Origin: Mizuhopecten yessoensis
Lineage: Eukaryota
DNA: 64,000 nucleotides
Reading direction: 5' to 3'
NCBI RefSeq assembly: GCF_002113885.1
Contig: NW_018404512.1
Span: 218,553 to 282,552, forward strand
The notes below the pieces were generated by a model. The model was not told the origin of the DNA. It did not search any database and saw only the letters and a list, made by a program, of their open reading frames with translations. This document shows, piece after piece, positions 8,701-14,700 of this stretch (position 1 is the first letter of the stretch; the number at the start of each line of letters is the position of its first letter). The position numbers were made by a program, and so were the translations under genes.

Positions 8701-11700
8701 GTGGAGGGACCTGAGGGAGAGATTTTGATACAGGTGAGAAACATTCTGGAGAAAATGGAAAACAAAAAATTCTGTTGCGATTAGTTTGATGTTTGGGCCA
8801 TATATTTGGTAAAACAACTAGACTAAATACTTGTCATTAAGTTTTGAGTTATTCAGATATCGGGTGGAAGGTGCATGCAAGAAATCGTGCTTAAGCAGTA
8901 AAAGATCACAGTCAGCATAATATTATCTGTTAAAAAAATGTCTGACCAGAAACCTCTTATGATCTAGAAGTTGGTTAATGGTTCTGTTAATATTCTATAG
9001 GTGAATTACATGGGGGAGAAGCAGTCCTTCACACCATTACAGATGACAGCCATGTTACTGACCAAGCTGAAGGAGACCTCCGAGACCGGCCTTAAGACAA
9101 AAGTGGTTGATGTTGTTGTATCGGTATGTTCAAAGTCATATACTTGAAGTCAAATGAGGATGAAAACACAATCAGTAGTGAATATGTTGTAAACTGAAGC
9201 TCTGTGTGACGTTACACAGTTGCAGATCTGTTGTGTTTAACTACTTTTATTTGAAAAAGTTGTATTTTTAAGAAGACATTCACTCTTTTGTAAGATAAGG
9301 ATGCAAGTATAGCTAGTATAATTTTTGTACAATGATGTCTTAATTATTAAAAACTCCTTTTTATTTAGGTTCCAGCATTTTTCACAGATATAGAGCGTCG
9401 TGCAATGTTGGATGCATGTCAGGTGGCTGGTCTGAATTGTCTCAAAGTCATGAGTGATACAACTGCAGGTGAGTTGGGGGTTAAATGGATCCTTTGGTTT
9501 CTAATATAACATCACAGTCATGATTAATGGGTGCAATGTTTGATCTGTTTGTCTGCAAGAGTGTATGATTTCCTTTTTAAAGTGCTAGCACACAGGCAGA
9601 TATAAAAAAAATCTTCTAGCTGACATTTATTTATATATAGTAAATATTGAAACGCTTTACTAGACCTGACATAAAATCTTCTATCCTTTGGTGTTGGGGT
9701 GGTGGAATCATACACCTCTGTTCTGAACTATTTCTAGAAAAATGTTGTGATTCTTATACATATCAGAACTGTGATTCTCAACATGAATTTAAACATGTTC
9801 ATTCTGATGTGGATTCAATAATCGATGATGTTCTTTTTAACGAAGTTCAAAGGGAGAGCACTCTTCCTGCTGTTACATCCCTTTTTGGATGTTAACATTC
9901 AGTAGAGTGCCAGATAAATGAGGATATCATTGACAGTTCTGATTGTAACCTGTGTCAAATCTGTCAATTCCTTCCCTACACCAGCACCTACATTAAATAA
10001 AGACACTTTTCGGGAAATGTTGTCATTTGAAAGTTATAGTTAAGATGTTACTGCACTTGTAAATCTAAGAATTGTCTGTATTATGACTTTTTCTAATTTA
10101 GATAATACATTACAGCTACAGGTGTTTTGTAGATTTGGAATGATTATAAATACTTGAGGCCTTTGAATATCTTAAAAAGTGAATTATTGATTTTTACAAA
10201 ATCATAAAGCTCTGCAAGAGTGTATTTGGGATAAAATGTGCTAGACCACAGGCAAATGTAAAACTTCAACTAGCTGACTTTTATTTTCATATAGTAAATA
10301 TTGAAACTTTCTTCTAGTCCTGACATAAAATATATTACCCACTGCTGTTGTGGTAGTGGAATCATACACCTCTGTTCTGAAATATTTTTAGGAAAATGTT
10401 GTATTTTCTTCTTATACATATCAGAACTGTGATTCTCAACATGAATTTAAGCATGTTCATTCTGATGTGGATTTAATAATCGATGATGTTCTCTTTGTCA
10501 AATTCAAAGGGAGAGCACTCTTCCTGCTGTTACATCCCTTTTTGGATGTTAACATTCAGTAGAGTGCCAGATAAATGAGGATATCATTGACAGTTCTGAT
10601 TGTAATATGTGTCAAATCTGTCAATTCCTTCCTTACACCAGCACCTACATTAAATAAAGACACTTTTCAGGAAATGTTGTCATTTGAAAGTTATAGTTAA
10701 GATGTTACTGCACTTGTAAATCTAAGAATTGTCTGTATTATGACTTTTTCTAATTTAGATAATACATTACAGCTACAGGTGTTTTATAGATTTGGAATGA
10801 TTATAAATACTTGAGGCCTTTGAATATCTTAAAAAGTGAATTATTGATTTTTACAAAGTCATAAAGTGTCCTATTTAAAGTGCTAGACCACAGGCAAATG
10901 TAAAACTTAAATATTGAAACTTTCTACTAGTCCTGACATAAAATATATTACCCACTGCTGTTGTGGTAGTGGAATCATACACCTCTGTTCTGAAATATTT
11001 TTAGAAAAATGTTGTATTTCTTCTTATACATATCAGAACTGTGATTCTCAACATGAATTCAAACATGTTCATTCTGATGTGGATTTAATAATCGATGATG
11101 TTCTCTTTGTCAAATTCAAAAGGAGAGCACTCTTCCTGCTGTTACATCCCTTTTTGGATGTTAACATTCAGTAGAGTGCCAGATAAATGAGGATATCATT
11201 GACAGTTCTGATTGTAACCTGTGTCAAATCTGTCAATTCCTTCCCCTACACCAGCACCTACATTAAATAAAGACAATTTTTCAGGAAATGTTGTCATTTG
11301 AAAGTTATAGTTAAGATGTTACTGCACTTGTAAATCTAAGAATTGTCTGTATTATGACTTTTTCTAATTTAGATAATACATTACAGCTACAGGTGTTTTG
11401 TAGATTTGGAATGATTATAAATACTTGAGGCCTTTGAATATCTTAAAAAGTGAATTATTATTTTTTACAAAATCATAAAGCTCTGCAAGAGTGCTGTTAC
11501 ATCCCTTTTTGGATGTTAACATTCAGTAGAGTGACAGATAAATGAGGATATAATTGACAGGGCTGATTGTAATATGTGTCAAATCTGTCAATTACTTCCT
11601 TACACCAGCACCTACATTAAATAAAGACACTTTTCAGGAAATGTTGTCATTTGAAAGTTATAGTTAAGATGTTACTGCACTTGTAAATCTAAGAATTGTC

Positions 11701-14700
11701 TGTATTATGACTTTTTCTAATTTAGATAATACATAACAGCTACAGGTGTATAGATTTGGAATGATTATGAATACTTGAGGCCTTTGAATATCTTAAAAAA
11801 TGAATTATTGATTTTTACAAAATCATAAAGCTCTGCAAGAGTGTATTTGGGATAAAATGTGCTAGACCACAGGCAAATGTAAAACTTCAACTAGCTGACT
11901 TTTATTTTCATATAGTAAATATTGAAACTTTCTACTAGTCCTGACATAAAATATATTACCCACTGCTGTTGTGGTAGTGGAATCATACACCTCTGTTCTG
12001 AAATATTTTTAGAAAAACGTTGTATTTCTTCAGAACTGTGATTCTCAACATGAATTTAAACATGTTCATTCTGATGTGGATTCAATAATCGATGATGTTC
12101 TCTTTGTCAAATTCAAAGGGAGAGCACTCTTCCTGCTGTTACATCCCTTTTTGGATGTTAAAATTCAGTAGAGTGCCAGATAAATGAGGATATCATTGAC
12201 AGTTCTGATTGTAACCTGTGTCAAATCTGTCAATTCCTTTCCCTACACCTACATCAAATAATAACTTTCTAAAGAAAAACTTGTCATTCAAAATTTATTC
12301 TTTAATGTGTTGCTGGAATTGCATCACACAAATGTTTGTATTATGAATCTTTTCTCATTAGATAATACATAACAGTTACAAGTGTTTTATAGCTTTTTAA
12401 AGAGTTATAATTTGACAAAATTTTAGGCTTTTGAATATCTATTTAAGTGGGTTAATTATTGATGTTAACAAAATCATCTAGTTCTACAAGGGTATACACT
12501 TTCCTATTTAGAGTACTAGCCCACATGGGGGTTTATTAATAGAATCTATCGCTACTGGTTGTGTAAGATAGAGAAATCTCAACCCGAGGACTAAGATTTT
12601 TTGTCCAGAACGAGGCTTGAGTTCTGGACAAAAAATTTTAGTCCTCGGGTTGAGATTTCTCTATCTTACACAACCAGTAGCGATTGATTATTTTTCTCCC
12701 ATACCTAACAGTATTTTAATGTGAAATAAAGGATAACATGGACCCAAAACGCATACTGGCAATTTGTTGATGGATTGTTGACGTGACGTCAATGTATTGT
12801 TGAAGTGACGTTATGCCATTGTTATTAATAGGGGAATCCACCCGTCTCAACCCTAGGGCGGAGACATAAATCTAGCACCGGCAAAACGGGAGATAAATCT
12901 GTCAGGTGTGGGAGAAAAAATCTTACTAGTCCACCTTTATTTTCATATTCAGAATTTTTTTCACTAGTCCCAACACAAAATGTATTAGCCCTTGGCATTG
13001 GGCTAGTAGAATTTTACTTTCATGATTTTAATTTATTTGTGTATATGAGCTTGAGCAGTTTAAGAAGACTTTTACATTGACTATCTTATGTCATTCTATA
13101 AATGAACAATTTGTGTCTTGCAGCATCGCTGGCATATGGTATATACAAACAGGACTTACCAGCCGAGACAGAAAAGGCCCGTACTGTTGTGTTTGTAGAC
13201 ATGGGCTACTGTTCTACACAGGTGGCAGCTGTGGCCTTTAACAAGGGCAAGTTGAAGGTAGGTTGACTGGACGTCAGATATCATAACGGGTATTAAAACA
13301 GGACATTGCTTAAGGTAGGTTACAGGTAGACAAACTTGTAAGGTTACAGGTAGACAAACAGGAAAGGATTGAGGTAGGCATTTCCTAGGCAACAGATTTA
13401 GTGTTAAAAAGGCTTACAAGTGCAGGATATATTAAGCAAAGGGATAAGGGTAGAGTACGGAACACAGGGCAGGATAAATATTGGCACACACAGTCAGGAT
13501 AAAGTTTGTCAAAGAAGGGCAGTATAGATGTAGGCAAACAGAGGTTGTCATACAGGTTTGAAAAAAAGTAGCTAAACAGAGCATGATGAAGGTAGATATT
13601 CAGAGGATAAAAGAAGACAAGAAAAGTCATTGCTTCATTATTGTACTGAAACAGTTTATTCCAGTGTTCTTTTCCTTATCACAGATCTTGGGCGTGGAAT
13701 GTGACCGTAAACTGGGAGGTCGAGACTTTGACAATGAACTAGTGCAATACTTTGTGGATGACTTCAAAACAAGATACAAGGTTGATGCAATGACACGTCC
13801 AAAGGCACTTGTCCGACTGACCCAGGAATGTGAGAAGATGAAGAAGTTGATGAGTGCCAACTCAACACCTATTCCCATCAATATAGAGTGCTTCATGGAC
13901 GACAAAGACGTCAGTGGCAGGATGGACAGGTAAAGCAAAAGGACATAACTTAAATATTGAAGTCTAAACAGGATGTCTGGTCACAGATTACATTATAAGT
14001 TCAAAAGATACAGTGTAAAAATAGGATTGATATTAAAATTGCATGTCCAAGTTTCTTTGTTAAATTGATAATAATAGGTAATAACACATTTTTAACCGGT
14101 TTACTCAGTAAGAATCAACAGAAAGTTAACGGAGCAGGCTTGTCTAGTCTTGGCTATGTTGGTTATCCATAATCTTCCAACATTTGTGAAGGCAATTCAG
14201 GCCTCTACTTTGTGATGTATTGCAAAGTAACTTCATTATCAAATATTAAAGCAAGTGGATAAAAGAATAAGACAACATTCATCAATATGCTTCAACAGAG
14301 TTATCCTTGTTTTGTATGGGCAATAGCCTACCTTCTGGTACCTTACATACTTCACTGTTCGCCGTGGATTGTTTTCATGATGACTGATCGTTTGAACTTG
14401 CATCTATTCAGAGGCTATGATTTTATATAATTCAGGTTTAACAATATAAAGACTTTTGTTTAAACTGACTGGATTTTTACCATAACTTCTATTGATGTTC
14501 ATATCAAAATAATGGGTACCTCATAATAAATGTTTTATCGATCAATATAGGCGTCACAACTAAGTGGTATGTCAGGATCAAAGGACTAGTATCACAATTA
14601 AAGGTAGAATAGAGGTTTTAAAATTTATTGTCATCTCATAAGTTTCAAATGACTGTACAATTTCAAAGTTTTGATTAGGTGTCTATGAAATTTCCAGTCA

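Follow-up and report, generated by a model that had tools for sequence, protein, structure and literature searches.

The Hsp110 locus and the array in its intron 4

The stretch analysed here, referred to as the window, comprises 64,000 nucleotides (nt) of the scallop Mizuhopecten yessoensis (assembly GCF_002113885.1, contig NW_018404512.1, positions 218,553 to 282,552 of the forward strand). Its subject is a tandem array of elements with the features of box H/ACA small nucleolar RNAs (snoRNAs), which lies in an intron of a chaperone gene. The product of this gene is a 'heat shock 70 kDa protein 4-like' protein (P0177), i.e. Hsp110/HSPA4-like. RNA contigs from three sequencing runs (X19, X20 and X16) connect position 9463 to 13119 and show that intron 4 is spliced, and this joint together with the exon map places the array inside coding intron 4, which contains four complete elements of the H/ACA type (126-127 nt) and one without its 5' end. 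All 23 available sequencing runs took the form of assembled contigs, from which RNA ends and abundance are not readable, and the window has runs of N at 47893-48166 and 48804-49145. By blastn, NEDP02001185.1 of GCA_002113885.2 (L001) matches the window intron with 100% identity and was therefore treated as the same DNA and not as independent support. The features of the locus are as follows.

5656-5763, 8530-8736, about 9001-9120, 9368-9463 and 13119-13260, plus strand: Hsp110 coding exons, located by tblastn with P0177
9368-9463, plus strand: coding exon 4, from the tblastn exon map and RNA contigs
13119-13260, plus strand: coding exon 5, from the tblastn exon map and RNA contigs
9464-13118, plus strand: coding intron 4 (GT..AG), host of the array, from the RNA contig joint 9463 to 13119 and the P0177 exon map
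9553-12530, plus strand: tandem array of units of about 610-660 bp, from repeat search and alignment
9858-9983, plus strand: predicted snoRNA copy 1, the 126-nt reference, from motifs and fold; 141.9 bits with covariance model R1
10515-10640, plus strand: predicted snoRNA copy 2, with three substitutions, of which positions 92-93 of the element belong to the apical loop in the 3' hairpin and position 119 directly precedes ACA
11127-11253, plus strand: predicted snoRNA copy 3, with a single extra C ahead of ACA
about 11488-11607, plus strand: truncated copy 4; 101 bits with the covariance model
12124-12250, plus strand: predicted snoRNA copy 5, with C39A and one inserted T

Repeat search and alignment gave repeat families of four to five copies whose starts lie 657, 614 (612), 353 (355) and 642 bp apart. 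Tandem Repeats Finder, which considers periods up to 500 only, did not detect the array. In a full unit, the 126-127-nt element is preceded by a flank of about 300 nt and followed by one of about 230 nt. Together with the RNA joints, these results bear out the first-pass annotation, which was made from the letters alone and had described four full and one truncated tandem unit of about 610-660 bp in Hsp110 intron 4. The units of the array core are 92-99% identical. The outer left edge (9560-9740) shares about 77-79% identity with the inner units (63% for unit 3, which is deleted there), and the outer right edge (12251-12500) about 69%. The array appears to have two age layers, namely older edges and a young, nearly identical core. 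In unit 5, the high identity to the other units stops directly after the third nucleotide following ACA, which fits a constraint on the RNA and could be explained by a duplication breakpoint as well. In the DNA run X2, the unique flank has a depth of about 6.6 and the repeat contigs of 18-22 (about three times the flank), and one RNA contig contains a 658-nt joint that goes back, as expected of a tandem repeat. These two observations agree with a few collapsed local copies, not with a genome-wide or dispersed satellite. The ratio of RNA to DNA depth is slightly larger in the repeat than in unique intron, but no weight was given to this difference.

The copies seem to be in different states. 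In copy 4, a deletion of about 305 nt at a TG microhomology took the flank preceding the snoRNA and about the first 11 nt of the element, which left it without the 5' strand of the lower stem (P1) and most of the pocket strand UCCUGC. It is likely a pseudogene, and its five private substitutions, a number that none of the intact copies reaches, are what a dead copy would be expected to show. In copy 5, C39A disrupts the G-C pair adjoining the pocket. Of the five copies, three would thus be apparently intact, one would have a weakened stem and one would be a truncated pseudogene.

Occurrence of the element in other bivalves

Relatives were searched for with the translation of exon 13685-13930 and then with full-length Hsp110 proteins from the database, and the genes were fetched with their introns. 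When the Mizuhopecten intron was compared by blastn with those of Ylistrum balloti, Argopecten irradians and Pecten maximus, only the snoRNA aligned, in the same intron 4, the sole exception being about 60 nt of upstream flank at one Pecten copy. Conservation confined to this segment of the orthologous intron had been set beforehand as a check on the proposed snoRNA, and it is seen in these three other scallop genera.

Ylistrum balloti, L002:5275-5396, Hsp110 intron 4: one copy
Argopecten irradians, L003:4985-5107, Hsp110 intron 4: one copy
Pecten maximus, L004:5502-5625 and 6677-6800, Hsp110 intron 4: two copies

The covariance model R1 was built from the scallop copies and searched in the Hsp110 genes of further relatives. 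It found members on the sense strand of Hsp110 in Tegillarca granosa (two, 57 bits each, E about 1e-11), Saccostrea cucullata (one, 46 bits) and Pinctada imbricata (one, 34 bits). No homologue was found with filters off in the Hsp110 genes of Mercenaria, Sinanodonta, Solemya and Haliotis, the rest of these genomes being outside the scope of the search; the best matches had E values of 0.03-0.99 and lay on the wrong strand or had no pocket, and the RNA may sit elsewhere in these genomes. A pattern scan of metagenomes returned nothing.

Two weaker matches to the model lie in other introns of the same gene. In Pecten maximus, Hsp110 intron 2 contains a match of 25.9 bits (L004:4279-4398), whose 5' part is family-like (GCACUCUUCUUGAUGUCACAUC...) and whose pocket and lower stem are altered. 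It may be a diverged paralogue or a relic in another intron, and no counterpart of it was found in the Mizuhopecten window. In Pinctada imbricata, a second match of 21.9 bits (E about 0.002-0.008) lies in Hsp110 intron 5 (L006:5323-5444); it is perhaps a relic or a different H/ACA RNA. In addition, the metagenome assembly ERZ21867824 from ENA contains an uninterrupted Hsp110-like open frame of 831 aa on a 397-kb contig (L009) with no introns, which would be either an intronless Hsp110 copy or the gene of an organism in which it is intron-poor.

Identity as a box H/ACA snoRNA

The folds and alignments contain the hairpin-hinge-hairpin-tail architecture of the H/ACA class. In copy 1, the lower stem P1 is formed by GCACTCT (9858-9864) and AGAGTGC (9904-9910), the pocket by TCCTGC (9865-9870) and TTCAGT (9898-9903), and the upper stem by 9871-9880 with 9887-9897. 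The H box AGATAA (9912-9917) follows 14 nt past the upper stem, and the 3' hairpin (9920-9975) is followed by ACA (9978-9980). Every motif that had been quoted was found in its place in copy 1. All copies are more stable in folding than shuffled sequence (z -3.6 to -5.2). The minus strand folds comparably well, however (z -4.8), so that this energy taken by itself carries little weight as proof.

The base pairing is supported by covariation. In a MAFFT alignment of eight scallop copies (A4), 94% of the cells are paired, as opposed to 34-42% when the partners are slid. Within P1, compensatory changes from U-A to A-U in Ylistrum and from U-A to C-G in Argopecten were observed, and the top pair of the upper stem (P2) occurs as C-G, U-A or U-G. 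An alignment of 13 sequences shows a compensatory change in 17 of the 30 pairs, a number reached by none of 500 shuffles, although these counts lean towards structure because the alignment was fitted to the model.

The boxes are strand-specific, and the element always lies on the sense strand of its host gene. In all seven species the H box has the form ANANNA (AGAUAA, AGAUUA, ACAUCA, AUAUAA or ACAGAA), and in the scallops of A4 it is AGAUAA or AGAUUA. The ACA is located 2 nt past the 3' stem and is invariant in all scallop copies; it is also present in Pinctada and one Tegillarca copy, while in the other Tegillarca copy and in Saccostrea AUA takes its place in the alignment and an ACA follows 2 nt later.

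In A4, the 3' hairpin consists of a basal stem GGA(A)/(U)UCC, a middle stem of 6-7 bp and a top stem of 3 bp, the last of which covaries (UGA/UCA versus UGG/CCA). An RNAalifold consensus, in which the upstream flank pairs with the tract preceding ACA, was rejected because Argopecten does not have that flank and the GGAA/UUCC pairing inside the 3' hairpin accounts for the same bases. The internal loops of this hairpin measure 2-5 nt per side, vary in sequence and lie 10 or 20 nt from ACA. Because of their size, variability and spacing, none of them makes a usable pocket, and the 3' hairpin was assigned no target, which agrees with the earlier failure to name one. The apical loops contain no Cajal-body (CAB) box (UGAG), neither in Mizuhopecten, where they read CUUUUU and UGUAACCUGUG, nor in the orthologues, so that nothing points to a small Cajal-body RNA (scaRNA).

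Rfam contains no credible snoRNA family for the element, neither at gathering thresholds across the whole window nor with E values up to 10 in 9400-12700. The best H/ACA rows of the relaxed search, TtnuHACA15 (E 5.3) and SNORA19 (E 9.4), were dismissed as noise. On the basis of boxes, covariation and conservation, the assignment of the element to a genuine, canonical intronic box H/ACA snoRNA, as first proposed, is well supported, and the predicted family is absent from Rfam.

Guide pocket and predicted target in 5.8S rRNA

The internal loop of the 5' hairpin has 6+6 nt, and the upper stem and the H box are 14 nt apart in scallops and Tegillarca and 15 nt in Saccostrea and Pinctada. With 5.8S ribosomal RNA (rRNA), UCCUGC would pair with GCAGGA and UUCA with UGAA, and UU would be left unpaired at the top of the pocket. 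The first-pass annotation had already fitted the pocket to UGAA-UU-GCAGGA, and the geometry is right, with 14 nt to the H box. In 12 of the 12 copies that keep both strands, CCUGC and UUCA are invariant, the 5' strand being (U/A)CCUGC. The two pocket bases past UUCA vary (GU, AU, AA, CC or UC) and would not pair with the target. The invariant bases coincide exactly with those predicted to pair. In 7 kb of random sequence, the conserved 10-nt pattern would be matched by chance about 0.007 times.

A primer for loop-mediated isothermal amplification (LAMP), TGTGAATTGCAGGACACATTGA, which was designed on ribosomal DNA of Chlamys farreri x Argopecten irradians, is printed in PMC2818637. It contains TGAA-TT-GCAGGA exactly, so the motif, whose lack in the host 5.8S had been named as an argument against the guide, is present in the scallop family. 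For the predicted pairing, the 5.8S of Mizuhopecten would have to contain UGAAUUGCAGG.

The 5.8S of yeast has a single pseudouridine (Ψ), at U73, which is guided by snR43 (PMC8351944). According to the same source, Arabidopsis Gm79 (Gm, 2'-O-methylguanosine) corresponds to human Gm75, and Arabidopsis Ψ78 is the uracil adjoining the yeast-equivalent one (PMC8351944). With this numbering, the unpaired UU corresponds to positions 73-74, and the canonical target is U73. The predicted site is therefore the first U of GAAUUGCAGG in scallop 5.8S, i.e. U73 in yeast/human numbering. The site had originally been equated with human Ψ69, guided by SNORA69, and this equation has to be given up in favour of the yeast Ψ73 site of snR43.

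Assessment of the assignment and its alternatives

Taken together, we consider it probable that the elements belong to an H/ACA snoRNA family of pteriomorph bivalves which is transcribed within the Hsp110 pre-mRNA, is freed from spliced intron 4 and guides pseudouridylation of 5.8S U73. A number of points count against this interpretation. The RNA contigs cover snoRNA and flank equally, as an unspliced intron would, and assembled contigs are unable to show ends or abundance, so that the discrete RNA of about 126 nt is a prediction. The unit of copy 4 is known from the assembly alone, with no mapped contig spanning its junction. The antisense element is short (5-6 + 4 bp), its match was assessed on 5.8S alone among the scallop rRNAs and small nuclear RNAs (snRNAs), and the 5.8S sequence itself comes from the Chlamys farreri x Argopecten irradians primer and not from Mizuhopecten. 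Human 5.8S is known to carry pseudouridine only at positions 55 and 69 and is not known to carry one at position 73. The description of human 5.8S as having two pseudouridylation sites is consistent with this (PMC8351944). No pseudouridine mapping of any bivalve 5.8S was found in the literature, and for Ψ73 in animals only a plant review turned up.

Some of these points leave room for a real H/ACA RNA with another target (28S, 18S, an snRNA or U74 of 5.8S), for which the U73 match would be incidental. Besides the range of RNAs scanned, it can appeal to a conserved antisense sequence of only 9-10 bp and to the mapped Arabidopsis pseudouridine, which is the adjacent uridine (PMC8351944); opening the U-A pair that closes the upper stem would give a 5+5 pairing presenting U74. 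We nevertheless regard it as unlikely, because a match as rare as that calculated above lands on the very uridine modified by an H/ACA guide in yeast, the pairing bases are invariant while the non-pairing pocket bases vary, and the spacing to the H box is canonical.

It is highly improbable that the element is not a snoRNA at all and represents a structured intron element, such as a splicing regulator or a precursor of a hairpin RNA, or a repeat with fortuitous hairpins. The equally good fold of the minus strand, the lack of a matching Rfam family and the still only predicted discrete form of the RNA would agree with this. Against it stand the defining features of the H/ACA class, namely the ANANNA hinge in seven species with the ACA (invariant in scallops) right past the second hairpin, the strand-specific boxes always on the sense strand of the host and the invariant pocket at 14-15 nt, as well as the retention of these features in an element that changed introns. 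Equally improbable, as a separate matter, is a copy number produced by the assembly, which the uncovered junction of the truncated unit would allow, but which is contradicted by the threefold DNA depth and the 658-nt back-joint. The least plausible alternative is a scallop counterpart of U69/SNORA69 guiding the human Ψ69 site (the U of AAUGUGAA): the target would lie in the same 5.8S segment, 4 nt from Ψ69, but the unpaired UU falls on 73-74 (PMC8351944), the GCAAUU required in the pocket to present U69 is absent, Rfam gives no SNORA69 match with E up to 10, and vertebrate U69 is hosted by RPL39 intron 2 (PMC2653536).

Proposed biogenesis and evolution

For the predicted guide of U73, the snoRNA would be transcribed within the Hsp110 pre-mRNA and freed from the spliced intron 4. 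Dyskerin/Cbf5, Nop10, Nhp2 and Gar1 would assemble on each copy, and the pocket of the 5' hairpin would pair with 5.8S so that the UU remains unpaired 14 nt ahead of the H box and its first U (position 73) is converted to pseudouridine, while the 3' hairpin would probably serve only as the second protein-binding hairpin. That the RNA is released, bound by these proteins and active in modification is deduced from the known biology of H/ACA ribonucleoproteins. To separate the internal copies of the array, more would be required than exonuclease trimming inwards from both ends of the intron. In the short-intron species, the last copy ends about 80-130 nt ahead of the 3' splice site.

Exon mapping places the element in intron 4 in scallops, in intron 1 in Pinctada, in the equivalent of Mizuhopecten intron 8 in Tegillarca and in about intron 15 in Saccostrea. 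The host gene thus appears to have been kept and the intron not, with a different single Hsp110 intron used in each bivalve order. The four pteriomorph orders represented here split in the early Palaeozoic. This pattern would result from an ancestor with copies in several introns and their differential loss, or from movement of the element inside the gene.

The multi-copy state appears to have arisen at least three times, with five copies in Mizuhopecten, two in Pecten and two in Tegillarca. The two Pecten copies are closer to each other than to any Mizuhopecten copy in A4, which suggests that their amplification is specific to this lineage or that the copies were homogenised. In Mizuhopecten, unequal crossing-over or replication slippage would have produced tandem duplicates of the snoRNA-bearing segment of about 650 bp. 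The recent expansion described in the first-pass annotation therefore holds for the growth in copy number, which is young, but not for the RNA itself, which is old and has homologues in Arcida, Pteriida and Ostreida.

It is doubtful that selection keeps the guide co-expressed with a stress-inducible chaperone, which would tie 5.8S pseudouridylation to proteotoxic stress and let the copy number tune the dose; a stress-coupled rRNA modification of this kind is speculation.

Comparison with known systems

By function, the scallop RNA would be an analogue of the 5.8S guide snR43 of yeast and not an orthologue of SNORA69, given that its predicted target is U73 and that U69 uses another site, host and antisense element; the likeness would be functional only. 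The other hairpin of snR43 guides a 25S site, whereas the 3' hairpin of the scallop RNA has no usable pocket. snR43 is also listed for a 28S site, consistent with its role on 25S (PMC2653536). Both RNAs are two-hairpin H/ACA guides, and snR43 acts on the very uridine of the conserved 5.8S segment GAAUUGCAG that is predicted as the target here (PMC8351944), but there is no detectable sequence homology between them (no Rfam match), and snR43 is not intronic in a chaperone gene. U69 guides position 69 of 5.8S from RPL39 intron 2, with an antisense element of 8+4 in chicken (PMC2653536). Like the scallop RNA, SNORA69 is an intronic H/ACA snoRNA acting on the same 5.8S region, but its target lies 4 nt upstream, its antisense element and host gene are different, and no Rfam match connects the two.

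In flies an intron commonly houses several snoRNAs, an arrangement first described in rice (PMC6619189; PMC2780460, citing Huang et al. 2005, Liang et al. 2002). The view that animal introns carry one snoRNA each, from which the array had seemed to depart, is a mammalian rule and does not extend to these fly and rice clusters (PMC6619189; PMC2780460). The intronic clusters of Drosophila and rice likewise yield more than one snoRNA from a single host intron, but the scallop array differs from them in consisting of near-identical tandem copies of one guide in a unit of about 650 bp, including a truncated pseudogene.

Chaperone genes are classical snoRNA hosts, with U14 snoRNAs in several introns of vertebrate hsc70/HSPA8. 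As in the scallop, the host encodes a chaperone of the Hsp70 superfamily and copies occur in more than one intron, but U14 belongs to the box C/D class and occurs once in each intron, whereas the H/ACA RNA described here occupies different single introns in the bivalve orders.

The results add an unannotated H/ACA snoRNA family to the molluscs, whose snoRNAs are barely catalogued, and predict a yeast-type Ψ73 in animal 5.8S, where the human molecule has none known. They also document how tandem duplication inside a single intron has multiplied a guide RNA, leaving intact copies next to weakened and dead ones, and provide a clear case of a snoRNA that stays constant in its host gene while changing introns over deep time. 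We consider the finding modestly new, in the predicted animal guide for a yeast-type 5.8S site and in the combination of host-gene fidelity with intron turnover; the known working of H/ACA guides is unchanged by it.

Other features of the window

Between the array and the 3' splice site, outside the snoRNA unit, lies a further repeat.

12468-12995, strand not assigned: high-copy repeat with a contig depth of 330-23000, as opposed to about 6 in the unique flank

It contains a long perfect palindrome (12557-12677) and a 22-nt tandem repeat (12770-12823) and is probably similar to a miniature inverted-repeat transposable element (MITE). The palindrome attracts sub-threshold matches to microRNA models, such as mir-1303 with 53 bits against a gathering score of 107.

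Upstream of Hsp110, a gene for a Plk4-type kinase is arranged head-to-head with it in Mizuhopecten, Ylistrum and Argopecten (L001-L003), so that synteny is kept. In the Hsp110 intron following the exon that ends near 18202, the minus strand contains a repetitive open frame of 383 aa (18108-19259) with motifs such as LCKVCLY, which resembles a minisatellite rather than a gene. The sole Rfam match at gathering score across the whole window is a transfer RNA (tRNA)-like sequence at 36610-36682 (45.3 bits) with several non-canonical pairs, which could be the head of a tRNA-derived short interspersed nuclear element (SINE).

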